A stretch of 64,000 nt of DNA from Syncephalis fuscata S228 (GCA_025786725.1 JAHLTZ010000008.1:124001-188000); one strand, 5' to 3'; positions 14,106 to 36,328 are shown, numbered from the stretch's first letter. Notes: generated by a model not told the origin, from the sequence alone. Program-made: numbers and translations.

Positions 14106-16038
14106 GTTGTCATAAAATAATAAGTAAAATGTTACTCAGCTAAAAAAAATTGAATTGAAAGGTCTTAAAATATGCTGTGGCTAATTAAAAAGCAGCTGCG
14201 GACTGGCTCATAAATACCATAAATAAGGTAGCAGTCAATAGATTCAATCGTAGCTGATTGTTTTAAGTGAAGCTTTTTGATAAAGCGCAAAAATAACGAG
14301 CAAAAGCAATAATATCCGTGTCGATAATTGATAATCAAATTCGTTAAAATAAAACGTAAATGCACAGCGTCGCTATGGTATCGTCAGTGACGGGAAACTG
14401 TGCGGCAGATAGATGTATAGAAGAAAGAAGGCAAATGAGATAGATGCTAAATTTGTGAATAGTTGCGACGAGACAAGCAAAATAGCGGATTTTTATAGTG
14501 TTCTTGTAGTTGGCGTAAAGGCAAAACAACTGGTTAACAATTGCCAATACGCTGCTTCACAAAGTTACTCACCTGCCCATACTATAGACATAACATTAAG
14601 TCAGCCACAGTGAACAACAGGTGACGAGTGAAACGCCGATTAGACAACATGAGAACACTTGTGGATAGTGAAATGTTGACGAAAGTTGGAGCAATGTTTG
14701 TGTAGTGTATGTTGGTTTTAGCTAAATGCCTAACACCGCTAAACTGGTCGTTAGTGCAGCGTTCAATGGTGTGACCGCGGCGTTTTTTTCGCCATCAATA
14801 AATAATATTACATCAATCTACTTTGCTGTATAACAAAAAATATGACGCAAATAGTCTTTAGAATCAAGCATTACGCGTGCTAATAATAAATTTTGAGTAA
14901 CATGTAACTGTGTGTCGTGTAAGCAGAATATTTCATTAATTGCAACAACAAAGCTTATCCCTCATTCTGGGTAATATAAATGAATAAAACTATTGTGTGC
15001 CATTTGTTTGGCACAAACAGAGGCCATATCGCCAATGAGCAACTTCGTTTGCAAAGATCATGTGAACAATATGTGGAGTCGCCCAATTGTGCACAGGTGT
15101 ACCTATCCTTGTTCAGCTTTTAGCGCTATTTTGAGGCCTTGTAACCGCTAATGTCCATATTAGGCTGCTTTACCAATAGCTATCAATAATACACAAATGG
15201 AATTCATCAAATTATTGGCTATTGTTTTACTACCTGATATGCCATTACTCCTATAACCGTTTTCAAACATTACTTTTATCCCACGGCGTTTGATATTTAC
15301 GCCAGCAATAGTTGTTTCTAGTTGAGGCCAAACTCGAAGTTTCACATCCACAAATAGCTGTATATACGGGTTCGCTAAACAGTAATGCATATTTAGCCTA
15401 AATTAGTAGTAGCACTATTTATTGATCAACAAACAAGGCATTTCTACACGTCAGGTCTTTACACTCAAGGTGTGCAGGTTAAAAATACCTTCATGCTTAG
15501 TAAAAAAATATTGATCTGTCTATAGCTATTAGATGCTGCCAAGTTTTGATAAACGATCAGATAGAGCGCAAAATTATAAATAAAAATCAGCATGCTGCGT
15601 TTTAATTATGGTAGATAGAGGAGGTGTTACTAGCCCAGTAGTTAAGGCAGCGTCTCCCAAGCTGAAGGCTTTGGGTTCTTTAGTTTGAATCAATCCTTAA
15701 GTGGAAATCCCCCAGTTTTTCTAGTTAAACAAGCTCAATTAAATTAAATAAGTGGGTCTAGAAACAAGACCTTGGCCAGAATAGCTGAAAAGAAACAATT
15801 GTAATTAACTTCAAGAGAATAGTGCTGTTTAGCACCATTTAAAAGAAATGACCTCCGCGTAAAGTTTATATGGACCGGATTTTGTGCAAAAACGTGGCTA
15901 TCCACCCATTAGTTTGGAGAAGTCCAAAATAGTGGAAAGCAGCACAAATTCTTTAATTATGCACAGCAGGACTCATAAGTTTTCTAAAATAAAATAAAAA
16001 TAAAGAGAAATTAAAAAATACGCCGTTATTAAATTTTA

Positions 16039-16626
16039 GGGGATTTTGAAAATACATTGTTTTAAATTTCATTATAATAAGGTCCTCTTTTCAAATTTTA
16101 TTTATTGAAATATATTGTTTTAAAAATCTACCAAATGTCTACCAAGCTATTTTAAAATGCCGTATTTAACAATATTGAAATACTGAAGCCTCTGTTGACA
16201 AGTTTAATTTGTTAGCAATTGAAATTTTAAGAGGAAAAAAGTGATTCAACAAGATTACAGCTCATTTGTCTTCATGAAGACCGTTCCAGCAACAAATATT
16301 GGTTTATTTCGGCTGCTAGAAAGCAGAAAACCAGCCTATTAAAGACTGCTAATGCAATCTTGAACGTTTTGACGACTATCCATACAATTCTGGTAATAAT
16401 AATATTATATTTATTACTAAATATATGCAAATAATGTTGCTACACTTTCAAATGTAAAATCAACATATATACAAGTAAAAACATCAAGATAAGCGCATGT
16501 TAATTATTAATATACACCAACAATTGCAATGATCAACAGATGCTATTGTTTGTTATTAGTATTAAATGACTTTGACTTATAGCAATAGTTTAAATCAACA
16601 GATTTATAACAAAAGTTGTAATTGAT
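16039..16626 (+). mobile_element. Left arm (TIR plus decayed 5' part) of a Mutator-like TIR element
   Basis: The ~83-bp end (16039-16121) is an inverted match to 33498-33570. The whole arm has an inverted copy at 42505-43094. Confidence 0.6.
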
Positions 16627-17160
16627 TGTTACGCTTCTTGTTTTAAAAATTGCAACTTGATGACCAAGCAACACATTATCCTGTCGCTATCCTATAACAT
16701 TAATTTCTGATGCTTATTAACGCTTACTTAACGCTCAGAATAAATGTGTTGTTTGGTTGTATTGCTTTTATAATAAGATTATTCCTTATTGGTCGTTAAT
16801 TACCACAGTTTAACTATAATAAACTGAATAACTTGTATGACACTAAGTAGAAATAATATTGGACTAGAAACTTATTATCCTTTATTATATTGAACAAAGC
16901 TATCATTATATAGTAAACACAACTAATAATAGAACTTGAATGCCTTGTGGTATTTCATCATTAGTGCAGCATATTAGTTCAGGTGGCTGCTCATATGCTC
17001 ACAACTAACAAGTAGCTACTCGTCATATTGTCGTAATAGACATTTGTTACTAGTAATCAGTACTAATATTTGATAGTTATATTATTTTTGTGATCAATCA
17101 CACGATATATCACTTAGTCACACTTTTACAAGACCTGTCCGGAATATCAGAACAGTAATA
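16627..17160 (+). mobile_element. Solo LTR, copy 1
   Basis: TGTTAC...GTAATA ends (family consensus TGTTAC/GTAACA). Homologous to three other copies. Flanks TGAT/GTAT. Confidence 0.7.
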
Positions 17161-17454
17161 GTATGTTACAACCTTATTCTTTCTTTTTATGTACATACTT
17201 TAAACCATGTTATGCAAAAAAAAAATTAGTTGCATTCGATCATTATTTACTCAAATAAATTATTACAAATATAAATGTATATTTTGATTGAATTAAAACG
17301 CAATTATTAAATTACAAACAATATTAAATAAATTATTTTATATGATATTATTATTTAAATAATGTTTATTTACAAAATTTTGTTAATACAGTTAATTTGA
17401 CTGTTAAATAACATATAAGTTTAGTTCATTAGCTTTATAGTTGTTATTAAAGTT

Positions 17455-17920
17455 ACTTACCAAAATACGGACAAATTCATTGTAGCTAACACGGTCCGCA
17501 TCGTCTCGTGTCGTGATTTTTGGCTGTCATTGCGTCAACATGTTGCTTTATATCATTTTGCTGACAATCTCCAACTGCAGTGTGTAATGCCGATTTAAGC
17601 TGATCTGTCATCAAACATTCTTTTATCCATATCATAAGCTTTGAAATTACGCCAAGTTTAATACGCTGATCACCGATTAATTGCAAGATTTGCTTTTTAT
17701 GCTTAACAAATTCTAGCATCTTGACTTGGCCATCCTTGTTGCAATCCAGATTAGCAAATAGTTTACTGAGAGTCTCGTCTGACACTGGTGAACCAGAAGC
17801 AATAAGAGCCTTTTTTAGCTCGGCTTCTGTAATAGCACGATCTCCATCGGTATCATAGCTTGAAAATGGGTCGACAAAATTCAATGAGGCTTGGTTAACT
17901 TGCTTGTAATCGAGTACCAT
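17455..17920 (-). CDS. Calmodulin-like EF-hand protein
   Basis: EF loops DTDGDRAITEAE and DCNKDGQVKMLE. Frameshifted third and fourth loops (YDMDK.., ..GTVSYNEFVRIL). The 3' end is approximate. Confidence 0.75.
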
Positions 17921-19432
17921 TTTGAATATAGCAATAAATAAAGGCAATAGATGAGAGCTGAATATTGGTACTATAACGAATGTTAATAAAAACGACTATT
18001 TAAACTATAAAAAACCACGTCATCATAGCAATTCACTAAACAGTCATATTCTGTACAATAGTTCACGTCTACGCGCAACATCATCATATTCTACTAGCTA
18101 CAATATTAACTTTGTCATTTTCACTATTCATTAAGTTTGCGTCATTGGTTTGAATACAATAAAAACGTCATTTTATTTCATGTTGGCTTGTAATACAATA
18201 ACAACGCCATTCTATCTGATGTTTGATCTATAGCATTGCTATTGCTACTAATTAGCAAGTTAATTATAGTTTATTATTTAGTGTGCACATATTCTTGATT
18301 CACTTGTATCATTAATGTTGTATATTGGTAATAATATATATATATATCATTTTATTCATTATTAAATCTTAGCTTTATTAATTGTACATCTGTCGCTGTA
18401 TATAGCGCGCTTGTAATTATTGTGTTACCATTGCTTAAATTACAAGATCCAACGAGTTCAGTTTAAGCTTGTTGTACTTAAATTAAGCTTTTCTCGTCAG
18501 GGTCTTTTGCCTGACTCTCCATTTTAATTGCCGACAGAATTATAAATACTTAATGCTGCCGGCCAAACATTAAATAAACAACTTTTTCTACTTCCAATTA
18601 CTTTTAGCTTATTTTCAGGTTTACACAGTTAAAACTTTTGTTTAAATTACGGAATAAAGCTATTTATTGGTAACAAAAGTTGTTAAGCGATTAAATTAAT
18701 AATTTATATTGATTTAAACAATTAGCAATTGACTAGACTACCTTTATTGCTCGCTCTCTCTTCTATTTAGGTTGCTTAGCAAAGCTTACAAAATTATAAA
18801 ACTAATTTGTAACAATAGTTATGTTTCTAATTTGATTAAAGCTATTTTTAAATTTTAATGATTTATATTTGGTTAAAAGAAAATACACGACAATTATGAA
18901 ATAAGTGTTACAAAATATGTAAGCAATTGTTTTTTATTATACCGAAATATCATATTGTATAGCTACAGTAATAATGGATACTTGTATATTATAAATTACC
19001 AATGAATTTATTATTTGCTACCAATTATATATATTTTATTTATTTATTTACTTTCTTGTTTATTTAAAGTTATATTTATTATTTATTATGCTAGACCACA
19101 TTAGTGATTTCAATCAATAATTTTAGTATTCATTAATACTATATTTGTAATTTATAGATCTTCGACATATAGCCGAAGTTTTTACAATATATATTAATAT
19201 TACTACTATTTTTTATTTATTAAATATACGTAAATATGATTACAGCTTTGGACATCAAATAATAACTACTCATATCCATATTTATATTAGTATATCAATA
19301 GCGATAGTCACTTATTTAACCAAATAACCATTTAGTAATAAAAATATCTAATTATTTATAATTATATTATAACAATACGTTTATTTATATCGTACGAAAA
19401 AAATGACTATTTACAAGCGAATTATCGAATGG

Positions 19433-19852
19433 TTATAAATCAACTACTGATAAAAGGTCAGCATCGGATAAAAAAATACTTTTTGCCTCTTTAGCTTCCT
19501 TGTTACGACGATCTTTCGCCTCAAGCTTATCGAGTATCTGTGATGGGTCTTGTCGTTGATGACTGTGATTCTTGGCAGAAGGCACGAACTTTCTAACGCT
19601 TGTTGGCATTTGTTGTTCACTCGATAAATCATTGTGACGTCCCATAGTTTTGGATAGCTGATTTGTATCCTGCATAGCTATGCCAAGTTCTTCGTTAGAC
19701 GAACCTAGTGAAGCTTCAGCTATAGCGGCCTCGGCATGCCCATCCGACGAGCTTGAGCCCGAGTTCAAAAACGACTGCCGCAAAGACGATACCGGATGAG
19801 GGTATTTCTTCTGCGAAGCCATCAGCTGCTGAATAAACAACGGGCCGTCCAT
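19433..19852 (-). CDS. Hypothetical low-complexity protein (~139 aa)
   Basis: GC-richer ORF island starting at ATG 19852, with no recognisable domain. Confidence 0.5.
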   Translation of the reverse strand: MDGPLFIQQLMASQKKYPHPVSSLRQSFLNSGSSSSDGHAEAAIAEASLGSSNEELGIAMQDTNQLSKTMGRHNDLSSEQQMPTSVRKFVPSAKNHSHQRQDPSQILDKLEAKDRRNKEAKEAKSIFLSDADLLSVVDL

Positions 19853-20026
19853 TTCGACAATGAATAAAATAGAGTTCTTGGTAGCAACAGAACAATAGAG
19901 TATAAGAGTAATGGTTGCCAACAAACTGATAATGTAGAATGTACAAATATTTCAGAAAATGATACTAAATAGTGGGAGATTCAACACCGATACACCTTGG
20001 GAACCAAATTTATTAAGACATTTGTT

Positions 20027-21804
20027 TTACTTTAATATTTGCAGCCCATTAGACACAGAACATAGCCATGTGTACAGACTATTGCCCTCGTTTTTACCAT
20101 CCGACGTCGACAAAATAATGCCATTTTCACATCCAATGGCAAGAGACGAACTGGGCGTGGAAGTGTTGGTAGGTGAGACTTGCCATGTAAGTGACTTAGT
20201 ATTAATCTCCATTGGTGTATCTAGTGTATTTGATTAATTAACAACAAATAAACATACTTTTAGTTACCATTATCTAGTGCTGAATAACTATTATCATACA
20301 TAAAAAACTATTAATTACTAATTAGTATTATGACCGATTATTATTGCCATCAAGATTAGCATATATTTATTTTCATACCTGTATATGTTCTCCTGGGATA
20401 AGATCGCCCAGTGTATCTATGGCTACCTGGCCTCGTGATGGATCACCACTGATAACTCTGCCTAGTAAGCGAGCTTCCTATATATCATTGTTATATTTAA
20501 TCCTGCTATTAATATGCCATCAGTAAATAGTAGTAATACCTTTGGCGAATACGGTGCTGTCTTATCGCATTTAAGATCTTTGTTATAAACGCCAATATAG
20601 TATTCTGTAGTCTCAGATTTTAATTTTTGAGATGTATCCATTGAGCGATAGTGTGTTAATAGTGTAGATATAGCTGCCTTGTCATCTAAATCTACAATTA
20701 CATTACCGCGACATCTAGTTATTATGCATTCGTATTGATTAGTCAGTAGCAATATATGGAATATAGCATATTGACTTGCCTTGTGATAGTCATAGGATTG
20801 CCAAGAGGCTGAAGTCCAGGGAATGAGCGTGTCACTGGTACGCTATCTTCTGACGAATTATACGTAATGGCGGCACCCACAATACCACTCTCTGTTACTT
20901 GTTCATTATAGAATAGCGTATGAGATAGACCAGTAACAAACGGTGTTAATGCAGCTACGCCGCCCATCTAAAACAACAACAGCATAAATAAAATGGTTGC
21001 AGTTTTAATAGATAGCTACCATGACAGCTTGAGGAAAGCGATGGTTGACAGCCTCAAAAAATGCATATGGTTCCGTGTCAGTGGCCAATATAAACGCGGT
21101 AGGATTCTAACGATTTATAAGCAGTGATTGTAATTAGTAGCTGTTAACCTACCGACATGGCTGTGTTTAGTTCGCTAGGTAAACAGTCGCTTATAGGTGC
21201 TCGCGTAATAGACCGGAAATCGGACGTTGACCAGTTCGATTCGTCAGTTCTAGTGTTACGATCGCCACTACCTTGTTCTGAGCTCATACGCAAGTGCGCA
21301 GGCCAACGACCTACAGGATTGGAGCGACGCCGTGGCAGTCTGCCTACAGGTATATGGAAGGGTACTACCTGCGTTGTGTTTGTATCAAATGCTAGTTCTA
21401 TAATAGCCACACCAGGTTTTGTGGTGTGGCCATTAATCGCGTCAACAACGCAGCCAAGTTGCACGGTATTAGTTGCTTTTGACGTTTCATTCAGACTATC
21501 CGTGCATAACTGCGGCAGAGTAAGAAGCTCAGTTTCCGAGTAATGTTTGTTTGCATAAATTAGCCGGAGTATACGGTGCTGTTTATCGTCATTACTGGTG
21601 CTCGTCTTTTGTCGTAAACTAATGGCACACTTATTCACGGCAGCTTGTATGTTTTCTTCATGACTATAGGCAGCATTTACGGCCGTCCACAGAAAAGCTT
21701 AGACTGAGCTTTCTTATTTTGTCGCAGCGTTAGACCATAGCAATATCTACCTGAATGCTGGTATAATATGGATATTGACGTGTCGCACGGTGGGATAGAA
21801 GCAT
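20027..21804 (-). CDS. FIST-domain protein (multi-exon)
   Basis: LGCVVDAI, MGGVAALTPFVTG..TLF, LQPLGNPMTITRCRGNVIVDLD and ISGDPSRGQVAIDT resemble fungal FIST N/C proteins. The start is approximate. Confidence 0.65.
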
Positions 21805-22063
21805 AGTGGAACAGTAATAACAGCAAAAATAAATGTGCAAATATCAATCGATTAATTAATTAATGGGAGCTACTATCTAAAAAGTTTTATCTCTAAACAG
21901 TGTTTGTAAATCGGCCCACATAAAAATATGATAAAGATCCGTTGAATAAGCGAAAGCAACATTAACATACTTTGAAAGATAAAGCAATGATGCTTTAGTT
22001 TAAATAAATAAATAATTTATTATCAACCATTAAATCTACGCCATTAGGTGAAAACAACTTTAA

Positions 22064-23716
22064 CTAGACGGCACTATAATCCGTGATTGCTATGAAATTG
22101 CTACGCGTACTGAAATACATGCTGGCCATCATCAAATAGGCCGATTCGTGTTGATCTCCCATAAAGCCGTAAATATAGCGCACATCTTGCTTCTTATTCA
22201 TATCGATAAGTACTGACTCGGAAATTCCATCAACATGAACCTCTCGAAATACGTACAAATTACCAATGATATGCTCGTATGCAATGGCAAATGGCCAATA
22301 GAATGTTTCGGTATAATCATGTCCATCTTTTTCATAAACCAATACACGATCAAATAAATAGCCAGTAAATCCTTCTTGCAGCAAAGCGATAGTGGCATGG
22401 CTTTCTGGAATGCGCATCGAGCCTTGTGCAGCGCAGCTTTTACCAGCAGATGCCACGCTGTGGACTACCTGCATATCGGCAATTTCATTGTGGCCCATTT
22501 CAAGTACCACTCGTGATGCATCTAAGGCGCAGGCACGAAATGGTATTGATTGTGGTCGTTGACTAAGGTAAAGCCATCCAAGACGTAGTTGTTTAACGGG
22601 CTTGGTGGCTGAAAATCTATATAAAGCCCATGTAATACGATGGCTATCATTAGCCTCTAATCGCGCCGTATATACGACTGCCGAGCCTTTTTCAACTTTA
22701 TAGAAGCACAAAGCATGCCAATGGCCGTCAATACTGCCAGGACAAATGGTGCCGCGTTCATGTCACCATTGATATATTTGTTTTAATGCCACTTCCTAAA
22801 AAGGTATTTTTAGATTGATGTAATCTACACTGTAGCATTACCTACCTTTATAATTCATCATACTAAATTGATCTAATCTAAATGATACTAGATCTTTATT
22901 CAAATGCTCAGACACTATTGCCCACCTTCCACTAACCAGTTCCAACTGAGCATCTATAGGAATGGTACACGTATGCAGTACTTGGTGATGGTGACGATCA
23001 CGTATTTCCAAAATACCATTTTCGGTCCTAGTTTCTGGCGTGCCTATTATGGCCGTGTAGCAATCTGACATTAACGGGTACTCATCCTTGCCACAACAAT
23101 GGCTAGGATTGAGCCTCCATGGTATAGCTTTCTTAGCTTCATAAGCTGAGACTGTGTCGTTGTTTATGCTCGAATTATCAATACTGGAGCTTGTAAGACT
23201 TTCAAGGCTGTAAATCGTTTCGATAGAATCGTTTGTCTCTTTGGAACATCCTTTCAATACAACACCAGTGGCTGCCACAGCACCGTTATTAAACTGCTTG
23301 CCATTCAGATCGATATTGACCTCAACATCTGTTGTGTTGGAGCGGCACAGCCGCCAATTGTGCTCAATGCATACGTGTCGCCGATAGACGTCATACCAGT
23401 CGAGGCTTTTTAAAGAAGTGGGCACATTATCTGGCATATCAGTACTATTGCGATAGTTACGAGCGCACCAATAGACAAACTCCCACTCTTTGGCATGATA
23501 AGCACCAAACATAAAATGATGTTTGTATATCTCTTTCCATAATAGCGTGTTGTTTCTAATTCTATTTCTTAATGAGCGACAGCAAACGCTTAAACGTAGC
23601 AATACTGATATTGGCAAATAGATAAACATACGATGCAAGTCGCTGGCTGGAAGTGTCCTTAGTAGCGTTATTAGTTTACAAGGTCGAGTCGATTGGACGT
23701 GCTTAATGGAAATCAT
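22064..23716 (-). CDS. F-box protein with divergent beta-rich C-terminus
   Basis: LRTLPASDLHRMFIYLPISVLLRLSVCCRSLR..LWKEIY (F-box), followed by DWYDVYRRHVCIEHNW. Confidence 0.75.
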
Positions 23717-23927
23717 TTTGGAAAAAAGACATGCCGCACAGATAAGCGGTTGCTGCCAATTATATTTATATTAGCAGCCTTGCCTTTTCTGTACAATGCT
23801 GTGCCATGACTGTTAATCAACAAACAACTGGTTTATTGGTAAAATCACAGCAACAAAATGACTTGCGCATTAATAAACACTTCAACATTTGTATGTTCAT
23901 TTAAGCCGATTAATGTTCTACAAATAC

Positions 23928-24934
23928 TTAACATAATAATAAAAGCGTTTTATTTATATTAAATAATGTGTGACGACTAATTATCATCGTCATGTGGGAA
24001 GGCTGATGGAGGCAAAAATGTATAACAAAGACCAAAAATAAACGCCACCAGTCCAATGCAACTACAAGCAGAGGTGTAATAAACCAGTTTTTTCTTTCGC
24101 CGTAGTGATTTGGCCACAACATTGTTGATGGTGTTTTGGTCAGATGATTTGGTTGGTATTGCCGGTCTTCAGCTCGGCCCCTTTGGCAGAAAAGACAGCA
24201 ACAGCTGACGATGAATAGTATGGCACCAGCAATAATCGCTGGTAATCCAATAATTAAATGAGCTAGAAAAAACGAATTCATATCACCTGAGGAACAGGCG
24301 AATTGATTGTTGTGTGAACTTGATATAATACACTCCGCATGGCACTAGCATTGCAGCTTTAATTGATTGTGCATGAATTGATTTAGTCTATTTACCTGAC
24401 TACTTGTTAAACATAGACTATAGGCATCTTTAATAGGCTTGCAAACGCCATTTAGTCCACAGAATCCACTTTTACAATTACCATAGGTATGCCAGCCTTC
24501 ATCTTGAACAATTGAAGTTAGATTGGCCTGGTATTGTTGGCGTAGTTCAAGCGTTTTCGGTACAGGACAGCGTTTACACTTGTGGCCTGTACCGACTTGC
24601 GGAATGTTTATAGATACAATTTGCAACTGGGAAATAGTACATCCAGCTGTGTTATTTGGTTTACAAAAAAAGCCATCTTCTTGGACAAAGCACTTTTGGC
24701 CTGAAGGACAAAATCTCCCGTAGTTGAACAGGCTGACACCGATGCATTCATAATTCCTATCGCTACTGCTTGATTTAATGCTAAATAAGATGATATAGCT
24801 GAACACAATTACTGCATATATAGCAAGCAATAGCCTAAGTAATAGAGAATAAAACTAAACCAATGGATACGTAAAAACAAACTTGGGTCACAATGCCGAA
24901 TAGAGCAGGCTTTAAATGTTTGCCAAGGTGTCAT
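23928..24934 (-). CDS. Cys-rich membrane protein (approximate ends)
   Basis: N-terminal hydrophobic segment, Cys-rich ectodomain (CPSGQKCF, GNCKSGFCGLNGVC), intron at about 24344-24394, and two C-terminal TM segments. Confidence 0.55.
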
Positions 24935-25192
24935 ACCTGATCTACGCTGTAAGTATGCCGTTTAGATCACCACTTCAGCTTTTATCATGTAAATCGGAGG
25001 TGAAATCATTTTATTGAGTAATAATCGATACACGCATATGGGTTGAGTTGGGTTTTGACATGCAGCCATCCTAAACATTGTGTTACAAAAAGGCCTTTAG
25101 ATAATCTATTTTGGATGTCACTGGACAACTTGTGAACGTGAGCTTTGATGTGAATAAAATAGTAACAAATTAGCAAATAGCTAGTTTATTTA

Positions 25193-26593
25193 TTAGCTCG
25201 TTGCCATTAAATTGATATTCGACAATTCCTGTTGAACATAATCGCCTGTAAGAATCTCGGGATACTTTTCGTCATCCTTGTTATTTAACAACGGATGCAA
25301 TAGGTTGTCGGAAGCGATATGAAGGAAAAAGGTCGAAGAAATGCGCCATAGCGGCCTGTCTGGCCGGCTTGTCTTTGATCGTTCAATTGCCTAATCAATT
25401 CGTAATAAGTATGTATTGCTTATCAAGTATAAAAATAGATCACCTGTACAGTTGCATCGGTAATGACAACTTCATGATAGCCGGCCTGAACGACGCCTCC
25501 TGTCAGCCATTCAAGTTCCTTGCCTGCTTGTACGAGTAGACAGCCATCGGGTACACGAACTGCAAGTTTCTTTGCACCATTTCGTGGCCAAATGTACAGC
25601 CCGGGGAAGCGAGATTTGCCATGAATGGTCAATAGATTAAAGTCATAATGGAATCCTATTATAAATTGTTAGCTACTATTACTACTATTGCTTCTATAGT
25701 CATATTCAAGCCTTACCAGCCAAAATAGTATCGGGCTTATTGTATTGTTGCAAGTCAGATGCTGTTGGGGCGAGTAAATGTGGCCCTCCTTTTGTTAGCT
25801 TTGTAAGCGCATCAGCCGGCAAATCAAAGCCAACAGCGGTCATTTCCGCAATTGTCAGCACAGCTGCATGCATATGGTTGCCCCAGTTGTTCATCGTACT
25901 TTCCCATTGCGGAAAGCCTAGTTAAAAACAATGCACAATAATTACAAATTAGTACATAATCAAAACTATAAATACTGAAACTATTACCTTCAGGAATAAC
26001 AGGTGGTGCATTCAGCTGTGGAAACTTTGAGCTGTTAGGCTGCTCGCCAATGCGCCAGAAGAATCGCCACTTAGGATCGGGACCAGTAGAAATTAATGGC
26101 CGGCTTTCCTCTGGCATCTAATTTATTTAAATAAATTAAATACAGTAACAAAGTATTCGTTTATATTTATTTAGCTTACCTTATTGATAACATCTTGGCA
26201 ATGTGGATCATTCCACACTTGGGCGCTTCACGTAGCGACGGTGTAGCGCCGATTTGATAGCTGAGTTCTGCACGAACATCCTTCATCTTTTGTTCCTCTG
26301 GTTGAGCAAAGTAGTCCTCAACCATATCGAGAAACCGTTCGTTATCTTGCTGCGTCACTCTTGGATCCGCACCAATAAAGCGCCATAGTCGCGCAGTGCT
26401 TCAGCAGCCTAAACAATAGTAATAGAAGTATATATATATTGATATGACATTTATATATGTTATACATTATCGATGTTTGCCCTTCTATTTATCTTTCTTT
26501 AGTAAAGCTTACCTTGCGGCACTCTGCACTGGCTGCAGCGCTGGTTTTATCGCTGAAATAAACGTTAAGATCAATAATAGGCAAGTCTTCCAT
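25193..26593 (-). CDS. 2-oxoglutarate/Fe(II)-dependent dioxygenase (IPNS/clavaminate-synthase-like fold)
   Basis: MEDLPIIDL start, GFHYDFNLLTIHGKSRFPGL (HxD), GYHEV and RPLWRISSTFF, with several introns. Confidence 0.85.
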
Positions 26594-26761
26594 GACTATA
26601 GACAACAATTGAATGTGGTGTAGAAATGAACAGTTTGAAAAAAGACTGACGTGGGCCAGCAATACCATTTTCAATATCCGCTTACTGACCAACTCAGGCC
26701 TTACATGCCCAAATAGATTACAACACAGCTGAATATAAATAGAATGAATCAGTAGCTAAAA

Positions 26762-28897
26762 TATTATTCAGATATGTTATTTGTTTTTGGGTTTTATTTA
26801 TACTAAAATAAAAGATATTAACCTGTATTCATATTCATTATACATAGTCTCTTGTTAATAACATTAATAAATCTTACATTCATAATACAACATACATATT
26901 ATGTACATGCCTATTCTATTGCCGTATCATGCCATTTAGTTATTGATTTTTGTAATTACAATTAGTATACGTTTTGTTTCTTACTTTAAGTAATAATGGT
27001 AATATAGTAGATTATATTGCATCAGGTGTTGTAATGGTCATTGGCTGATCACTATTATATTTTATAGCACTCTGATTGCAATACAAGATAAAATAATCGT
27101 AAATCTTGTTTAATAAATAGTAATACGTATTATGTTGATAGCAATTAAAATGACAAATCTGCTATTTTATAGCCTTCGCTATCTACTAACAGTAGCACGT
27201 TTTTTGTGTTAGCTGTACCACTTAGCAATAAAGAATAATTAATCAGATGGTTAAATCTTGAGATAGCATCTGGAGATTTAAATGGTTTTTCGTAAAATAC
27301 TTTAAATCTATGATATCCAAGTTCTAGTACGGCTTAAATGAACAAATATATTGCTGTAAATGTGCTGTTGTTTTTGGATTCACGAATAGCAAAATTTTCA
27401 ATATATAATAAAAAATCGCTATACATACTCATACTTGGAGTGGAATGAAGATTAAGGGTAGACATAGCGTTTCTACATCGGCATGTGCTAGTATATTAGC
27501 AGTTAACTGTAAATTGTCTTCAATAAAACTCAATTATCATCTAGTTTTCTAACAAGAATTACGGATTTGCCAGATTTCTTAAAGCAAATTTCACCTTGCA
27601 TTAAGCAGCGCGGACCATGTCCTAGATAGCAATTCAAAACCATATATGTTCCATTTGAATGTAGTAGTGGTATCTGAGCGATGAAATAATCTACTAGATA
27701 TAATTACTATTTCATCCGTAACTTTCAATAAAAACATTTCCCCTTGATGACTTGCAATAGTATCCATGCATTTTTGATTATAAGCAAGATCAAAAATGTG
27801 TGTTTTTTCTAATATATAATAGTTAGTTGCTTTTAGCTGTTAACTCAAAATGACTAATCATCATCCAGTGACCACGAATGTATGCATTATTGATTAACAG
27901 AAGAACTGACGCGGTCGCACAATTGAGCCTAGATGCACTGGCCAGATAGAAATAATGCACGACTGTTTGCAAATAATGCTTATGCTATTTGCTTGCTCAT
28001 TAACAGCCACTATGAATCTATCTGAAATCTATAGTTGACATCATTGCGAAATAGTCAACACAAATGCCAATATTACATAGTAAACATTTTTCCTATTGGC
28101 AGGTATTGCTCAGCAATAAAGCATTTCCGCATGCCATCATGATGATAAGCAATCCGTTGCAATGCAATAGAACGACTGCTGTTTGGTTCTTTCTCCATTG
28201 AGCTTCTAACTAAATAGAATATGCCTTTAAGCCAATTGACATCAGTAGCAATCGATAGCAAAATGCATGAAACCATTCGGTATTCTGCTCATTCAGCTAA
28301 GTATCGCTGATTACTGTTTTGATAGGTGATGCAAACAACTTCAATGTACTACTGCCTTCACATACCAGGACAGTCATGTATCTTGTTGCCATCAGCGATA
28401 TTATAATAATGCTATATCAGTGATGCAAGCAAGTGTCTTGTTAACTAACGCAATACCGCAGCCATTTACAGCACCATGAAAACAGAACAAGTGAGCTGCG
28501 TCGGCAAATGCGGCAACACGCACAGTAACAAGCATAGTAATATGATCCACCATGATGAGTAAATAAGACAAGAAAAGGGGCAATAGCTGGACTGTCAAGA
28601 ACCATTACTGTCAACAATACTTTGCTAAAAGACAGGCGATCATAGCGCGCATTTATAATAAACATAAGCTAGACGTGTATTTTGAGCATATGTATATGCC
28701 ACACAACCTTCAAAAATCATTAAACTGTTTGGAATGACAATCTACCTACAATACAGTCGTCATAATCATACCATCTATTCTATTTATTATGATGTGTTAT
28801 TTTGAATATAAAATTATATAGATTAGTATATTGTCTATTGATTATACATTATTGGTAAAAGCTACTTGTTTATTATTAATTTTATTTATTATAGATA
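26762..28897 (-). pseudogene. 2.1-kb duplicated block with a degenerate F-box gene (inverted copy at 43303-45442)
   Basis: Near-identical reverse complement. Across frames it reads VRVAAFAD..LVLFSWCCKWLRYCVS and EWFHAFCYR.IATDVNWLKG, like the F-box gene at 23716. Confidence 0.65.
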
Positions 28898-29747
28898 CTT
28901 TATTAAATTATATTTTGAGTTGATGATCAAATAACTAACTTTAATAATATCCGCGCAATTGAACTAGAAATTCGTTTATTAAACTGAAAATTGGGTGGTG
29001 AGTAGCATTGGTCATCAATATGCATTATCATAGATTTAATATTTAGTATGCATGTATTTTCTAAGCATTTAAACCATTTCCATTGTATACTAATACTATT
29101 ATATATTATTTTATACTATACCGAATATATTTTTTTATTTCAGTCATTTAAACTATATGCTCTATAGACCTAACACTGCAATCCATACATTTTGCATGGT
29201 ACATTCATTCTACTGTATATCATTATATCACCTAACAACACTTTATCAATAAAAGCTGCTTAATTATTATCAACTGTATTATATATTTCAATCTCTCTCG
29301 CTTATTATGCTCATACAATCATATACAATATAGTTTGTTCACTTGATATGCATAGTCATTTTACAAGTATCCCACGATGGTTCCACACGACATCGATCAC
29401 GCATACAAATAGGTGTGTGTGTGTGCTGTCTTGTGTGTATGTGTTGAAGGTCTCAAGGTTGGTTTGGTTGAGCCGTCTATATTTTCTTTCTTTCTTCAAC
29501 AACTTTTTAAATCGTCGATTAGCCAGCCACTGCACTTGAATCACAAAGTGTACGCCTTATTGGAGTAGTTGTAGAAGTCGGCTCGTTTGAATTCAAACAC
29601 CAAGAATACTGTTTCTAGATTATTTGTTTGCTACTAGTGTCGTTTTATACATAAATCGCCGGATTATTCCAGTGCAGCTACCGCGTCTAGTCCTATAGCG
29701 TTGAATCCCGCCCATGTACCCAGTGCATTTCTCTTGTTTGTCCCCCG

Positions 29748-32652
29748 ATGACACTGAATACACAGCGAAAAGTAATAGATCTACAGCAATCGATGCTTTC
29801 GTCAACCATTAACTCGATTTCTTCTACTTCCGACAACACTGTTCAATCTGTTTATACCAACTGCTGTGCACACAACTCAGACTGCTCATCGATGCATTCT
29901 ACTGCATCCGCGCTTTATTATTTATCATCAAATACAAAAAAATCAACTTCAGTGCAACAGCAACAACAGCTTATTCACTATCTATTGCTATGGAGCTTTG
30001 TCTTGGGATCCAAATGTCTGGCCAGTCAGCCATGGAACTCGCCTCTTATCGCCACAATATGCTGCCACATGGATTGGGCGCTATTCTGTCTACTATCGGT
30101 ATCGATCATAATACGAACGCTTAAGATATCAAGTCGTTTATTTGTCACTGCCGTACTATTTCATTTTTTGCTTGATGTAATATTATGGTCGATGCTTCAC
30201 TCCAATTTCTCGTCTACTACTACTACGTACAACAGCAATAATAATGCCAGTTCTAGTTTTAACCTATCAGAAACAATCGATCGAAAGAGCAGATGGCGTT
30301 ACAATATGGCTAACGGTGTTATTTACCTTTATTTTTTACTATGGCTACATCGACCATTGATCAACATTATACTGGGTAGAGATTACCACACTGGCCATGG
30401 CCGGTCCGGTAAACTTAATAGATGGTGGTTTACAAGTCTAAGTGGTCTATTGGTAATTACGATACATCATTGGATAAGCCAGTATTACTATGTTCCATCA
30501 AGACTTGTAGTTACTGGCTTTTATTCTATGTTAAATACTGCACTTATTGAAAATCTGGAGCAATTGTTATCTGTCCATGTTATTGGGCATGGCGTATATT
30601 TATTGCTATCAAAGAATATGGATATTTTTATTTATCTACGACATCAACAGTTGATACGTAGAGAAGACAAGAAAGCAAAAAATGGCCTTCATATTGCCTC
30701 TATGTTTTCAGTATCTGATAGGGATACTCGCCGATCAGCTCATGAAGATTTGAAAGCAGTATCGAGTTCGGAATCTTTCTGTATATTAATAAGAAAAGAA
30801 ACTAACCATAATAACAAATACAATCAACGCCATCCATTACCACTATTAAAAAAACAAATTAACAGCAATTCTTTACTGTCATTTAATGAGGAACAACCAT
30901 GGGCGATACCAGCCTATTCAACATCTAGTCATAGTCGTGACGACAAAGGACATGATAGTCAGAGTTTACCTTCCATAGCAGCAGCAGGAAGTATAAATCG
31001 ACAGCAGCAACAACAGCTTGTTGGCCATGCTTATACATCGTCTAATGCACGTTTACCAACCTCGCCACTTTTACCGCATCATCCAATGTATGCTCGAGTT
31101 GAAGTATTGGACAGTTTTGATTTATGTGTCGTTGGATTATCTGCATACACGGCTACATTTACTTGGCTATTTCCATCGTCGATGATTAGTGCGTTGGATG
31201 CTAAGCCATGGCAACAAGAAAACGCGCCAATGAAATAGATCAACAGCAGCAAATAGATGTATCGCTCGATAATAAAAACGAGCTTATTAACTCGGCCAAT
31301 CGAACTATGATCATTACAGCACGCGATTTAACCATACGCGTTGACGATGTAGTATGGACGGAGACAGATCTAGATCCTGGATGTCATGCGCTGACGGTTT
31401 ATGGGCTAAGACCCATAACGGAGTATCGAGTGACTATGTCGTTGGCCGGCTACCGTAGTGCACCCATACGAATCTGTACAGATCCCGATCTCAAGGTAAG
31501 ATATAAAATAATATTAATAGTATGGTGTAAAGATAATAATACTCAATGATCATCTAGTAGTTAAGCCATTAGAGGAGGAAATGGCCAGACTGGACAGTAA
31601 ACCGCTACATTCTAATGGTACAAGTTTACCAAGTAATAGCGCAAAGGAAATGCCTAAAAACACTGCCGAGACAGTGCCTCAAGAATCAAGTTCTGTAGTA
31701 GCAGCAGATAAAGATAGTACATTACATCAATCTTTATTACCGACTACGGACAAGGAGATGGAAAAGAAACCACAAGAGGAAGAAAGTAATGAAGTATTAG
31801 ATAATTCACTTGAAACACTAGCCACCACGTTAAAACAGCAATTGGAGCATGTCAATAAAGAGAAGCAACAGCTACAGACACGACAGCGCAAGCTGAAACG
31901 CGATTTGCAAAAGGCCGAAAATCAGTCACGAGGAGAGATAGAAGCGCTAAAACGAGCGATTGCACGTTCTGAAAGTCAAGATGCTAAAAACCGACAGCGT
32001 GTGCAATTTCTACAAGATCTGGTGAAGCGAACGTTAGGCTGTATGGATGAATTAGACGAGCAAGTGGCCCAAGCACATGCCAATCATGCCCAAGTCAGCG
32101 CAGAAGCCACCGAACTAGAGGTAGCTCTACTACGAGTACGAGAGGAGTGTCGAGAAGCAGAACAGCGTCATCAACGCCAAACGGCAATGCTTCAGCGCCA
32201 GAATCGTGAACAACAGACACGTTTAAGTGGAATAGAGTCTACTCGCGATGAAGCACTGGCCAAGATAGCTCGATTGCGCGAGCAGCAACTTCCAATGCAT
32301 ACTAGAGACTTGGCGGATTTAAAGACGCGATTAAACGAATCACAATTCGTGTGGAGGAATTACGCCAGCAACATGAAGTGCGCAGTCGACAAATGCTGCA
32401 CGCGATAAAGAAGAGGGTGCTGGTATAGCTCAAATTAAGCGGGATATTTCGATAGCACAAGAGCGTAACCAATCCTTACTGCAGCTTACACAAGAAGAGG
32501 CGTCATTTAGTGATCGACTTCGTTGTGAATTATTTAATCTGCACGCTCCAGCGGACTCAACCATGGACAATACTAACCGTCAATCTTATCATAATTTAGA
32601 CAGTAGTAATGAAGGCGAGCGTGATAGCAATGTAGATGCAAATGCACGATAA
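29748..32652 (+). CDS. Multi-pass membrane protein with FN3-like segment and coiled coil
   Basis: N-terminal TM segments, LTVYGLRPITEYRVTM (FN3-like), intron from about 31496 and a long heptad-rich C-terminus. Confidence 0.65.
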
Positions 32653-32761
32653 TTATAAATATCAATATATAACAAAATTATATTATGTGCAGTTATTTAC
32701 TCTAATGAACAATATGTCTATAATATACTGATCTTTATTCGTTTTTATAATATTATTCTAT

Positions 32762-33326
32762 TGTTACGCTTCTTGTTTTAAAAATCGCAACTTGGATGAC
32801 CAAGCAACACATTATCCTGTCGCTATCCTATAACGTTAATTTCTAATGCTTATTAACGCTTACCTTAACGCTCAGAATACAATGTGTTGTTTGGTTGTAT
32901 TGCTTTTATAATAAGATTATTCCTTATTGTCGTTGATTACCACAGTTTAACTATAATAAACTGAATAACTTGTATGACACTAAGTAAAATAATATTGGAC
33001 TAGAAACTTGATTATTCTTTATTGATATTGAATAAAGCTATCATTATATAGTAAACACAACTAATAATAGAACTTGAATGCCTTGTGGTATTTCATCATC
33101 AGCGCAGCATATTAGTTTAGGGGCTGCTCATATGTTCACAACTAACAAGTAGCTACTCGTCATATTGTCGTAATAGACATTTGTTACTAGTGATCGGTAC
33201 TAATATCCGATAGGTATATTATTCTTGCAATCAATCACATGCGACTTTAACTGGTGATCCAATCACACGATATATCACTTAGTCACACTTTTACAAGACC
33301 CTGTCCGGAATATCAGAACAGTGATA
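32762..33326 (+). mobile_element. Solo LTR, copy 2
   Basis: TGTTAC...GTGATA ends. Direct repeat of 16627-17160. Flanks CTAT/ATAT. Confidence 0.7.
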
Positions 33327-33626
33327 ATATAAATTTTGATAATAAGCTAAAATGAATTAAATTATAAAATTAATCTTTATTGAAAAACAAATACAAACTA
33401 CTAATGAAACAGCTATCAAGAAAAGAAAACGTGTTATTAAAGAATGTTTAATTTGTAGTAAACGCCATTACAAGAAAACGAAGTGTGGGGTAAATAAAAA
33501 ACAATATATTTAATAAATAAAATTTGAAAAGAGGGATTTAGTATAATGAAATTTAAAAACGGTGTATTTATTTTATAAAAAACAGGAAAATAAATAAATT
33601 TAAAAGTGTATTTTCCAAATTTTTCC
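33327..33626 (+). mobile_element. Right arm of the Mutator-like element (zinc-knuckle remnant plus TIR)
   Basis: 33361-33513 translates to ..KKRKRVIKECLICSKRHYKKTKCGVNKKQYI*, with the stop inside the inverted repeat. Confidence 0.6.
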
Positions 33627-33883
33627 TATAATAAAGCCATTTTGGTCACAAACTGCCTTAATAAGTGCTAACTTAGCAGGCAAATAATAATCACATCTCT
33701 TTAGCCATTAATCATCTATCAATCTGCATTTAATAACCAAGTGCTTACGCCAGTATTTAAGTCGCGCTTTTCGCTAACTGTTTGCCAATATTCAGTAGCT
33801 TTTTTCTTGTTATTTTGTTTTAGTTTAACGCTCACACTTTTAACGTCCATACCTCCAACATCCATTCTAACCTTAAGCTTATT

Positions 33884-34468
33884 ATGCATTTCAGTCTATT
33901 ACCCACAATCATTATTCTCGGTCGTCTATTTGCAACAATTATTATTAATGTTAACTCAGTAGCTTCGTTGCCGACACAGAGCGGTCGAAGGGGAAGTTTC
34001 GACAAGCTGCGAAAGGCTGCCATCATAAATGGCTCATCCCCCTTGGCATCAAACCCAGCAATTGATGATCTAAAACGTATCATGCCATCCGACAAATATT
34101 TCAAAAAAGACGGATTTTACGTATATCCTGAAGAGTGGTTTGGCTACAGTAATAAATGGGCTATTGCCCATGGATACTACGCTGCTTCGGCTAGTGTTTA
34201 TGGCCAACCTGGCTATGCCGAAGAAGTTGCTGTCTATATTACCTGTACGAATAGTCTGAAACTATACAATCTACTGGCAACAGGTCGTAAGGTGTGCAAA
34301 ATTACTGCTTTGTTTGTATTTGTTTACTAACTGTTGACATTTTAGCTTATGCAGATGCACTGGCAAAAATACCCCATTGAGATACCAGGCACTGGTAGAC
34401 ATGGAATTGCAACACTTCAATCGTTTCAGCCTGAACCTCAATATGCGTGTAATGTTTTTCTATATTAA
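33884..34468 (+). CDS. Small secreted 2-Cys protein, paralogue A, copy 2
   Basis: Intact exon-1 frame from the ATG, with the same intron and exon 2 as copy 1. Confidence 0.8.
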
Positions 34469-35703
34469 AACATGATAATGAGTAATATTAATAAAAGTTT
34501 TATGATAATAACACTTTAAGCTTATCTTTATCTATAATTTATCAGCCATAACCTGTGGCAAACACTGAACCAGCAATGATTCAATATTCATCACAGACTA
34601 ATATGGCAAATTAAAATCTAGCATTAATACCAAATATTAATTTTATGGTTTGCTCTGCGGTAGCTTGCATTACATCTTCAACAATTTTTGGTGTGTGCAT
34701 CTGCAATAAATAGCAAGTTAAATTGAGTTAAAATGTGTTATATTCAAATTAAATACTGCAAGATTTCTATGACATTTAACAACTAAATGTTCCATGACAT
34801 TGATAGTGGCAAAAATTGGCAAGTTGTTACACCATATGTTGGTTTATGATCGATATAATGTAAAATATAGACACTACACTGCTCATGAAAATCATAACAT
34901 ATGGCGAAAGTATTTCATTTTATGATAACAAAAACAGCAAGCACAGTGTAAGAAGAAAAGTACTCGTTGTGTTCTAACCTACAGTCAAGTATTCAATACA
35001 TGTAGAAAAATACAACATATATAAGAATGAAAATGTAAATAAATTCAGTGGCAAAATAATGTATTGCAATGATAATTAAATTTAAAACTACTAACTTAAT
35101 TGTCAGCAGATGTAATGCATCATTTATGAAGCTGTACTGTTTTATAAATACTGGTAATCACCACGATCGATATATTGTAACAAGGGGGTCGTAACTACTC
35201 CGCTTGTTACATATTGCAATATGAACTATTCAGTTCATTATAGTTGAATCATGATAATTAATGGCCAATAGGAAACAAAATTAGTATCAAAGCATTGTCA
35301 ACCAACATATTGTGTTTTAACCGCTAGATAAGTACAAGTAAATATCAGAAATTAGCATTATAAGATAACGCTAAGATAAGGTGCTGCTTGGCTAGCTGAG
35401 TTACAATTTGTTAAATAAAGCTGTAAAAATATAAATATTAGTGTGATTGTTTTGTAAAACATTATGCCAATCGGCATTATTGTAATACAGGTATGTAATA
35501 GAATTTCCTTGTTGCCATAAAAAGTAGATTGATACACGTGAAACAGCTAAAGAAAAATTATATCGTTCTGCTTATGATATCGGAGTTTTATAATCTTGAT
35601 GCCTTTGAATTGCTTTTTAAAATAAATAGATAGATTTTTCGGACTATTTTAGTTTTCAATATTAACCATCCATTACACTAGTAGATTTTACAAACAAACA
35701 GAC

Positions 35704-36328
35704 ATGCATTTTACTAGAACAGCTTTTGTATCAGCTTGCTATGTACTGGCAATCTACGCCAGCCTTATAGCTACTAGTTTGGCTTCTCCAGCTTCTCCAC
35801 TTGAGAAATATATAATGAAAAAACAATTAGCCGAAAAACAATTAGCCGAAACACAATTCGCACCAATAGACAGCCCAGAATCATCGACAACCAAAGTATC
35901 ACTTTTCGATGCCATCAGTGCAGCTTTACCACTTGGATTTAAGTTCTATTGGGACAAGTACAAACTGAGCTTTCCAAAAGAATGGAAAAAAGACGCTAGT
36001 GGTGGCTGGGCATACACCTATGCAGTACTATCCTCCAAAGGTTCAAGGTTATATTACACCAGACAGAAAAGCGCCTATGTGATCTGCACCGATAACACTG
36101 AGCTATTTTCAGACTTTAGCAAACAGCTCAATGTAAGTAAGCGCTGTGTAAATAGTATTATGTGCTGACTTTTACTAGGATGCATCAGAAAAGAAAGCAT
36201 TGCGGACGTTGACTATTCCAGGATTAGCCGGTTTCATAACAGAGCAGCAGCCTTCCTTTAAGCCGACTAAACAAATCAGCTGTTTGCCGGTGTATTATCA
36301 ACATGCTTTGTCTAAGAATAAGCTGTAA
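35704..36328 (+). CDS. Small secreted 2-Cys protein, paralogue B, copy 2
   Basis: As copy 1, with G14V, G84D and G120R substitutions visible in the ORF track. Confidence 0.82.

Follow-up and report, generated by a model that had tools for sequence, protein, structure and literature searches.

In the 64,000-nucleotide stretch of Syncephalis fuscata S228 analysed here (the window), a short, defective transposon of the Mutator type, with a solo long terminal repeat (LTR) inside it, now lies as two halves 15.6 kb apart. The gene cluster is prone to rearrangement, and the split most likely arose there when LTR copies recombined. This is an ordinary kind of transposable-element-driven rearrangement with an unusual result. 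A preliminary description of the window had instead read the two halves and the DNA between them as a giant composite element of 17.6 kb, in which recombination at the nested LTR either loaded a multi-gene cargo, for example from a circle, or deleted it to leave a compact form. Recombination at the nested solo LTR remains the best explanation of the split; a mobile composite element is not supported.

Self-comparison of the window matched positions 16028-17100 to the reverse complement of 42027-43108 (95.4% identity) and 32755-33532 to the reverse complement of 41732-42511 (98.6%) and revealed a direct repeat, 16625-17102 versus 32760-33239 (94.6%). The matches are long and of high identity, far above what chance would give. 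Since overlapping parts of one compact unit are matched on the left and on the right, the halves bracket 17165-32754, with a copy of an ~570-bp repeat at the inner end of each half and 15.6 kb of single-copy DNA between (Table 1). The compact unit and its recurrence as separated halves, described earlier, are therefore real, with some bounds corrected: the compact unit starts at 41662 as given but ends at 43108 rather than 43094, and the left half starts at 16028 rather than 16039, while the end of the right half at 33626 stands. The cores of the terminal inverted repeats (TIRs) of the split element are 89% identical over 73 bp (16050-16121 versus 33498-33569), giving it the long TIRs of the Mutator superfamily. 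The outer ~50 bp of the TIRs hold more copies of a AAAATACAC-type motif, which is common to the termini of the copies on C90 and C351 discussed below.

Table 1. Features of the split element, its compact copy, and the surrounding DNA (window coordinates)
Feature	Position	Strand	Remarks
Block A1, first window copy of the 8-kb host block	7958-16027	+	97% to 33627-41661
Left half of split element	16028-17164	+	Left TIR, armL, and LTR copy L1
Left TIR core	16050-16121		Within left half
armL, putative decayed N-terminal transposase exon	about 16225-16489		Broken peptide matches at C350:140225-140489
LTR copy L1	16627-17160		Within left half
Segment X	17165-26761		Single-copy gene-bearing DNA
EF-hand ORF in X	17486-17947	-	PF13499, 6e-13
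~400-bp dispersed repeat in X	18423-18833
FIST-like match in X	20776-20967	-	Weak, sub-threshold
F-box-like ORF in X	22838-23716	-	Just below Pfam cut-off
Segment B, F-box family gene or pseudogene	26762-28897	+	One inverted near-identical copy, B'
Segment Y	28898-32754	+	Single-copy; ORFs 29748-31238 and 31581-32408
Right half of split element	32755-33626	+	LTR copy L2, armR, and right TIR
LTR copy L2	32762-33326		Within right half
armR peptide	33361-33510		Within right half; C-terminal basic patch and Cys/His motif
Right TIR core	33498-33569		Within right half
Block A2, second window copy of host block	33627-41661	+	Self-comparison
Compact element, TIR-armL-LTR-armR-TIR	41662-43108	-	Self-comparison
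armR peptide of compact element	41755-41904
LTR of compact element	41939-42504
armL peptide of compact element	42645-42914
Spacer g between compact element and B'	43109-43302
B', inverted duplicate of B	43303-45442	-	98.8%

The two arms are Mutator-like, as the preliminary description had proposed. The armL peptide has 116 relatives in the genome and the armR peptide 96, paired 1.1 to 1.7 kb apart, and the Mutator-like element (MULE) family numbers over 100 copies. In a full copy on C90 (L057), ORFs match PF10551 (MULE; 1e-19), PF00872 (4e-11), and the SWIM domain PF04434 (2e-5); its N-terminal ORF is ~65% identical to the armL peptide, and an armR-like C-terminal exon lies ~1.5 kb downstream. 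Judged by these relatives and domains, the arms are relics of a MULE transposase, and the element is a non-autonomous MULE of 1.45 kb with an internal deletion. The copies on C90 and C351 are 99.3% identical and apparently active, and the family as a whole is probably large and active in this genome. The arms also occur directly joined: in an LTR-free paralogue on C112, armL-TTAT-armR is contiguous at the exact LTR position. Target-site duplications in the Mutator superfamily measure 9 to 11 bp; these are unreadable at the three local element copies, all of which abut duplicated blocks or rearranged ends. Paired LTR/arm copies on C235 were rejected as relatives of this arrangement; they have a different inverted-repeat structure and are unrelated to block A.

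The repeat shared by the two halves has the TG..CA termini of an LTR (TGTTAC...GTAACA across copies). At least 40 copies were scored among 386 candidates, and flanks and a tree were obtained from the 26 copies examined. A 4-bp target duplication is perfect in 12 of the 26 and matches at three of four positions in 3 more, and no internal region adjoins the LTR in any of them. The genome has 77 reverse transcriptase (RT) matches, none of which adjoins a listed LTR (at least 40 of the 386 candidates scored) and none of which lies anywhere on the split element's contig. Termini and target duplications together uphold the earlier identification of the repeat as a genuine solo LTR. Matching target duplications are absent from 11 of the 26 solo LTRs, which suggests that LTR-LTR exchange is frequent in this genome. 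Members of this LTR family land repeatedly in MULE relics.

At the split element, both cargo junctions fall exactly at LTR edges. The outer flanks are GTAT on the armL side and ATAT on the armR side, and the inner flanks, GTAT at L1 and CTAT at L2, fit the target motif of the family and match each other at three of four positions. As now paired, the flanks agree fully at L1 (GTAT/GTAT, 4/4) and at three of four positions at L2 (CTAT/ATAT), against 3/4 and 3/4 in the pairing reconstructed below. L1 and L2 differ by ~5% plus a 28-bp indel. In the LTR tree, the four local LTRs form one clade relative to the 26 other copies in both LTR halves. Within this clade, L1 pairs with the upstream compact copy and the inverted compact copy with L2; none of the four contains a stretch that looks like a foreign LTR in either half. 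The LTR of the upstream compact copy is L1-like until 8 bp from its 3' end and then runs into armR, whereas the LTR of the inverted compact copy resembles L1 in one base at a 5' site and L2 in its 3' half. A diverged LTR at the cargo ends was considered and rejected: where X begins and where Y ends, similarity to the LTR is no more than chance.

The element lies in a twice-duplicated block-element-block array, next to two inverted features, the compact copy and a 2.1-kb F-box duplicate. The split halves sit within an 8.2-kb direct duplication (7958-16121 and 33627-41767; 97% in the self-comparison). Block A1 contains an OPT transporter (PF03169, 5e-58) with its neighbours and ends at the left terminus of the element; block A2 lies between inverted repeats of ~770 bp, formed by the right half and the compact copy, and the A2-side terminus of the compact element carries a flipped 53-bp segment. 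The third element copy, also compact, lies ~61 kb upstream on the same contig, between two more copies of block A. A1 groups with A2 over 130 informative sites, and stretches of block A reach 100% identity between A0a and A0b and 99.8% between A1 and A2, a pattern that evidently reflects concerted evolution among the block copies. RIP-like mutation in a divergent stretch of A0b was not supported, the excess being mostly misalignment past a truncation point.

The cargo is tied to the DNA beside the compact copy by segment B, which recurs inverted at 43303-45442 and has ~25 further paralogues genome-wide at ~70 to 73%. The B|Y junction matches DNA downstream of paralogues on C79, C146, and L051, and the first ~240 bp of Y are homologous to DNA downstream of other F-box paralogues; the B'|Z junction matches DNA upstream of L045 and L047. 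No match to the X|B junction was found among the F-box paralogues. The g|B' junction is mixed: one paralogue match runs 24 nt into g, ~60 nt of g resemble a motif upstream of F-box paralogues, and a ~60-nt motif is common to g and Z. On these short matches, of 70 to 77% identity, one junction of each B copy appears typical of the family and the other novel, as would be left by an inversion that duplicated its breakpoint sequence.

Genome searches showed the cargo to be single-copy, with no donor copy elsewhere and no second copy of the 17.6-kb unit. It holds several ORFs, on both strands, and no PBS, PPT, or RT was found in it. Among the genes previously ascribed to it, the EF-hand gene was recovered, the F-box-like and FIST matches fell below threshold, the former just so, and 2OG-dioxygenase (only PF13640 tried) and FN3 domains were not recovered. 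No Pfam family was found for the two ORFs of Y. An exact-protein look-up of two cargo ORFs gave no match, and a homologue search returned one 43% relative, on a 3-kb contig.

The best-fitting history, to which we give slightly less than an even chance, is a splitting of the MULE by LTR recombination through two inversions, with later LTR gene conversion. An LTR retrotransposon inserted into the MULE and was reduced to a solo LTR, and the cargo would have been neighbouring host DNA with a solo LTR of its own, in the order A1 - compact element - A2 - inverted compact element - g - X' - solo LTR (inverted) - Y' - B' - Z. Homologous recombination between the element LTR and the inverted host-DNA LTR ~19 kb away would have produced the first inversion, leaving oppositely oriented halves. 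The second inversion would have duplicated the F-box gene B at its breakpoint and turned the right half back, so that the halves now look collinear around X-B-Y. Gene conversion with paralogous copies may later have homogenised the LTRs. Inferred here are the sequence in which these events took place, the solo LTR once present in host DNA, and the gene conversions.

Two inversions are formally sufficient, as a symbolic replay of them reproduces the present order and orientations exactly; a single inversion between existing repeats, worked through by hand, never rejoins the halves, so the minimum is two. The inner flanks, GTAT and CTAT, are 3/4 alike, as expected of the target duplication of one former solo LTR. 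Support for this history also comes from the single-copy cargo without a donor, from the contig without an RT match, from the apparent junction pattern of the two B copies, and from the suggested frequency of LTR-LTR exchange and the evident concerted evolution in this genome. Neither a circle nor a donor locus is necessary under it, and the circle integration suggested earlier is thus dispensable: two inversions yield the arrangement and account for the inverted copy of the F-box segment as well. Against it, the target flanks agree a little better as paired today than as reconstructed, and since no foreign LTR appears in the tree, either two gene conversions to the ends of homology or a very close partner LTR must be assumed. 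No ORF spanning the predicted ancestral junctions was found.

Loading of the cargo from a circle is unlikely in our judgement. A circle with X-B-Y and one LTR, arising either through excision between two recombining LTRs or around a solo LTR, would have recombined homologously into the solo LTR of the compact element and added 15.6 kb. Junctions exactly at LTR edges, target-like inner flanks, and the missing donor copy (compatible with cut-and-paste via a circle) agree with this route. So does a second sister-LTR pair (98.3%), on C257, which brackets a host ornithine decarboxylase gene with inner flanks ACAT/ACAT, as expected of a circle that had been opened within the solo LTR it carried; for yeast GAP1, circles bounded by LTRs have been discussed together with their reintegration (PMC6298651). 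However, a separate event would be required for the inverted B/B' duplicate, the one native-like and one novel junction of each B copy would be left unexplained, and the foreign LTR segment is as invisible as under the two inversions; neither a circle nor a scar locus is identifiable.

An assembly artefact, in which cargo from elsewhere between two LTRs was threaded into the element LTR or the repeat array was mis-joined, seems quite improbable. There are four 8-kb repeats and three copies of the element in the region, and 13 single-base deletions are private to the 1.1 kb of the left half, which points to weak consensus, but such deletions are equally dense in parts of A2. Two small public read runs of 2017, from one sample, gave contigs on repeats (armL, LTR, and the 400-bp repeat) and zero depth over the unique cargo at 17204-18373, and so did not confirm the joins. 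An artefact would nevertheless require two complementary false joins within an 820-kb contig, the divergence of L1 and L2 is too great for collapse in the assembly graph, and no contig ends with a matching LTR.

It is extremely doubtful that the LTR-cargo-LTR arrangement is ancestral, as a giant LTR-bounded insertion or two LTRs at the cargo edges, with the compact copies as solo-LTR deletion products. The four LTRs are monophyletic, as would be the two LTRs of one insertion and their derivatives, and the LTR of the inverted compact copy resembles an L1 x L2 crossover product; the upstream copy, L1-like almost to the 3' end and then joined to armR, is something crossover cannot give. The lack of PBS, PPT, and RT in the cargo and its multiple ORFs on both strands also speak against this arrangement, as do inner flanks resembling integration sites, which are unexpected of a retroelement interior. 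The compact form is primary and the split derived, because the C112 paralogue runs armL straight into armR at the LTR site; this empty site and the LTR haplotype of the upstream copy led us to reject a compact form derived by cargo deletion, which the preliminary description had allowed.

That nested-LTR recombination placed about eight intact host genes between functional MULE termini, making a 17.6-kb macrotransposon movable by an apparently active transposase, is very unlikely, although, if it were so, homology would offer DNA transposons a route to whole-gene cargo. That the unit is or was itself mobile, in the manner of a Pack-MULE, is barely credible: both TIRs are correctly oriented and share the subterminal motif of the apparently active copies, but the unit is single-copy, has neither a second site nor a readable target duplication at its ends, and is flanked by the same duplicated blocks as the upstream compact copy, which therefore is related to it by segmental duplication, not transposition. 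Nothing indicates that it ever moved, and these observations do not support the giant composite element or its cargo-loading route.

The two-inversion history would make the locus a clean example of nested repeats (MULE TIRs, solo LTRs, and paralogous genes) that drive successive duplications and inversions within a gene cluster. Rearrangement of this sort can look like a transposon with cargo, and collinear halves alone are insufficient for annotating composite elements. The MULE family, the LTR family, and LTR-LTR exchange are relevant to the diversification of secreted-protein, transporter, and F-box gene clusters in this genome.

Among known systems, the element resembles non-autonomous MULEs with nested solo LTRs in its long TIRs with repeated subterminal motifs, in arms that keep the N-terminal DNA-binding exon and C-terminal Cys/His tail of the transposase, and in the 4-bp target duplication around the nested LTR; it differs in that 15.6 kb separates the halves of one copy, each half having an LTR copy at its inner edge. 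Pack-MULEs of plants also hold host DNA between MULE TIRs, but they carry short gene fragments, are multi-copy, and have 9- to 11-bp target duplications, whereas here whole multi-gene segments are present in a single copy, no target duplication is readable, and the junctions lie at LTR edges and not inside the MULE. Inversions in which staggered breaks duplicate the breakpoint sequence are described from Drosophila. Here, too, the inverted segment lies between inverted duplicates, B and B', with one native-like junction each, although these calls rest on weak paralogue homology, and recombination between pre-existing inverted copies would look the same. Alternative transposition of Ac/Ds yields tandem direct duplications with the element between them (PMC3744419, PMC4270019); the repeated host block A, with the element at the junction and the second copy starting at its terminal base, recalls the bz1-m4-D6856 type of array, a likeness that bears on the A-element-A array only and not on the split. 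Ectopic recombination between LTR/Ty copies gives rise to inversions and deletions, and to circles such as that of yeast GAP1 (PMC6298651). There, as here, the exact sites of breakage are dispersed LTR copies, and hybrid junction LTRs are expected; that signature is not visible here, and one partner LTR lies inside a DNA transposon, so that LTR exchange splits the transposon.

Self-comparison of the window resolved a compact element (TIR-armL-LTR-armR-TIR) and a split counterpart, whose halves flank a 15.6-kb segment (the cargo; see table). The left 1.1 kb and right 0.8 kb of the compact unit recur as these halves and overlap in a ~570-bp segment, which is present on either side of the cargo as copies L1 and L2; the terminal inverted repeats (TIRs) of the split element have 89% identity over 73 bp. 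The parts named in the preliminary description were recovered almost to the base. An 8.2-kb direct duplication of a host block (A1, A2) surrounds the halves, and a 2.1-kb inverted duplicate (B, B′) ties the cargo to DNA beside the compact copy. Upstream contig sequence contained a second array, ~61 kb away, consisting of block copy A0a, a compact plus-strand element (E0), and block copy A0b; block-element-block is present twice on the contig, once with the 15.6-kb segment and once without. At its terminus facing A2, the compact copy has a 53-bp segment that is flipped relative to its ~63-bp counterpart in the left half and is bordered by short inverted repeats (GAGAAATTA / TAATTTCTC-like). The flipped segment retains a motif that elsewhere belongs only to the outer left TIR, so this copy may be the product of an in situ inversion by way of its TIRs.

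Positions of the split and compact elements, their surroundings, and related loci
Feature	Position	Remark
45-bp stretch before A1	7913-7957	common only to the two first block copies (other on L031-L032)
A1	7958-16027	direct duplicate of A2
OPT transporter part	11944-14400	equivalents in three other block copies
Left half	16028-17164	95.4% to compact unit
Flanking-segment copies	16625-17102; 32760-33239	94.6%
Cargo	17165-32754	
Segment X	17165-26761	
Dispersed repeat	18423-18833	~400 bp
Segment B	26762-28897	98.8% to B′
Segment Y	28898-32754	
Right half	32755-33532, extending to about 33626	98.6% to compact unit
A2	33627-41661	
Compact unit	41662-43108	minus strand
Spacer g	43109-43302	
B′	43303-45442	inverted
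Flipped terminus comparison	41662-41770 vs 16019-16125	
L1/cargo vs armL/LTR junction	17153-17169 vs 16609-16632	
LTR start, right	32751-32760	
Full MULE copies	L057 (C90:21262-24522); L058 (C351:14404-17664)	different loci
LTRs in or near MULEs	L007 (C112:52434-56174); L005/L042 (C235); L014 (C350:792388-795951); L017/L019 (C146, C347)	
Sister LTRs, C257	L039 3260-3834 and 8634-9208 (G000:C257:11260-17208)	
Inverted repeat, C235	L041+L042 (C235:209251-224503)	

Both arms are remnants of a transposase of the Mutator-like type. In the 29-Mb genome, the armL reading frame (90 aa) has 116 relatives and the armR frame (50 aa, with a basic patch and Cys/His motif) has 96, mostly paired on one strand 1.1 to 1.7 kb apart. 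Two near-identical full copies on contigs C90 and C351 (99.3% over 2.1 kb) carry a PF10551 MULE domain (1e-19), a Transposase_mut match, and a SWIM finger between armL- and armR-type exons, and a AAAATACAC-type subterminal motif is common to their termini and the element in the window. The earlier Mutator-like assignment was therefore right, and the element is an internally deleted, nonautonomous member of a large MULE family. The transposase frames of the full copies are open in three pieces, and the family has probably been active recently. Inspection of ends for a 9-bp target duplication found every local copy abutting duplicated or rearranged DNA.

As first proposed, the 570-bp repeat common to the compact and split elements is a solo LTR. 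It starts with TGTTAC and ends with GTAACA, and at least 40 scored copies among 386 candidates in a genome search have 86 to 94% identity. Perfect 4-bp target duplications flank 12 of 26 independent copies, with a 3/4 match at 3 more, and are biased in type (ACAT, ATAT, CTAT, and ATGT among them). No gag-pol region adjoined the LTR at the 26 copies examined, nor were there reverse-transcriptase matches on the window's contig. Flanking bases match at two or fewer of four positions at 11 of 26 solo LTRs (L005-L030); mismatched flanks are usually read as recombination between different LTR insertions. At several independent positions, LTRs of this family also occur within or next to relics of the same MULE subfamily, in either orientation, which suggests an insertion preference for such relics.

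Sequence comparison with a diverged relative on C112 indicates that the primary state is the compact form, from which the split form derives. This relative has its own LTR ~100 bp further left; where the window element has GTAT-LTR-ATAT, its armL end runs through a single TTAT into the armR start without interruption. Before one ordinary LTR integration, armL was thus joined directly to armR. In E0, the LTR stays L1-type up to the last 8 bp at its 3′ end, yet armR follows it. Together these rule out the alternative in the preliminary description that deletion of the cargo left the compact form.

The cargo junctions lie exactly at LTR edges, implicating LTR homology, and the split most likely arose by LTR-mediated ectopic recombination, in agreement with the earlier proposal on this point. 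A single inversion between existing repeats never rejoins the halves. In a symbolic replay, two inversions rejoin them and yield exactly the present order and orientations. The starting order would have been U - A1 - element(+) - A2 - element(-) - g - X′ - solo LTR(-) - Y′ - B′ - Z, where U precedes A1 and Z lies beyond B′. Recombination of the element LTR with the inverted solo LTR ~19 kb downstream would give two oppositely oriented halves, and inversion of the g′-to-Y′ stretch, with B duplicated at the breakpoint, would give today's order. B belongs to an F-box family (about 25 paralogues at 70 to 73%). The start of Y, just right of B, resembles DNA downstream of paralogues on C79, C146, and L051, and the start of Z resembles DNA upstream of paralogues L045 and L047; the X side of B had no match among F-box paralogues. 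The signal in g is mixed, with one paralogue's match entering it by 24 nt and a ~60-nt motif common to g and Z. On this reading, each B copy would have one native-like and one novel junction, the signature of inversion with breakpoint duplication.

The cargo would then be the array's former right-hand neighborhood, which would account for its lack of a donor copy. It is single-copy in the genome search except for B and a 400-bp dispersed repeat, which has at least 25 copies (80 to 91% identity) and looks like a MITE or SINE. Its inner flanks, GTAT after L1 and CTAT before L2, fit the LTR target motif, so the LTRs beside X and Y look integrase-placed rather than products of random breakage; no retroelement features were found in cargo DNA adjoining them. 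Among the cargo genes first listed, the EF-hand call is solid, the F-box-like one near threshold, and the FIST-like one weak, while 2OG and FN3 domains were not recovered from cargo ORFs.

Single-crossover models predict hybrid LTRs with a foreign part, in conflict with the LTR tree, in which 26 other family copies fall outside a single clade of the four local LTRs. In the 5′ half these four are nearly identical; in the 3′ half L1 groups with E0 and L2 with the inverted compact copy (~15 substitutions and a 28-bp indel between groups). If gene conversion is assumed to run to the ends of homology, it could reconcile the two: the upstream array would have been the donor for L1, as 4 of 5 discriminating armL sites also suggest, and the inverted partner on the other side of A2 (armR identical, LTR 98.4%) the donor for L2. 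Gene conversion is clearly active in the block arrays, where A0a and A0b have 100% identity over 2 kb and copies group by locus at 130 of 147 informative sites. The identical stretch sits just before the OPT transporter part, which has 90 to 95% identity between copies, compared with 97 to 100% in flanking noncoding parts; read from these identities, the pattern is one of patchy conversion and divergence. Comparison of the 4-bp flanks slightly favors the present LTR pairing, with matches of 4/4 and 3/4, over the reconstructed pairing, with 3/4 at both LTRs; this is a weak preference given the biased LTR target sites. The L1 end and first nine cargo bases (GTAT, then GTTAC) agree with the armL/LTR junction in 15 of 17 positions; C112 has a comparable LTR-TSD-TGTTAC arrangement. 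This junction and the right LTR start form a 9- to 10-bp direct repeat around the cargo; possible explanations are microhomology, a short templated insertion, and a second-LTR remnant.

Excision and integration of a circle, the loading route first envisaged, accounts for the same junctions and is supported by analogy (PMC6298651) and by a second case on C257, where an ornithine decarboxylase gene lies between sister LTRs (98.3%) with identical inner flanks. The circle route does not explain the B/B′ pattern, and we regard it as unlikely. The C257 LTRs belong to the window's LTR family, are 4.8 kb apart, and have inner flanks ACAT/ACAT and outer flanks ATGT/GTGT; the ORF is intron-free (PF02784, 8e-81), making this a second LTR-host gene-LTR case, without any MULE. 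An assembly artefact, which would require two complementary false joins, is less probable still. On the side of an artefact, public sequencing runs are very small and confined to repeats, and 13 private 1-bp deletions fall in the left half. A mobile macrotransposon is scarcely credible: the unit has a single copy, with flanks common to the compact paralogue, and the giant composite element and cargo-loading route of the preliminary description are not supported.

The split is best grouped with LTR-mediated ectopic recombination, as one more case of an event type already known, and is not a Pack-MULE. A 3.4-kb inverted repeat on C235 (89.5%) holds LTR copies and ~80-bp tandem-repeat arrays and encloses 8.4 kb without relation to block A. 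The host block starts at the base directly following the element's right terminus, and the two first block copies are preceded by a 45-bp stretch found at no other copy, an arrangement reminiscent of transposon-mediated tandem duplication. Tandem duplications produced by Ac/Ds alternative transposition (PMC3744419, PMC4270019) resemble the block-element-block arrays, where the element's last base marks the start of the second block.
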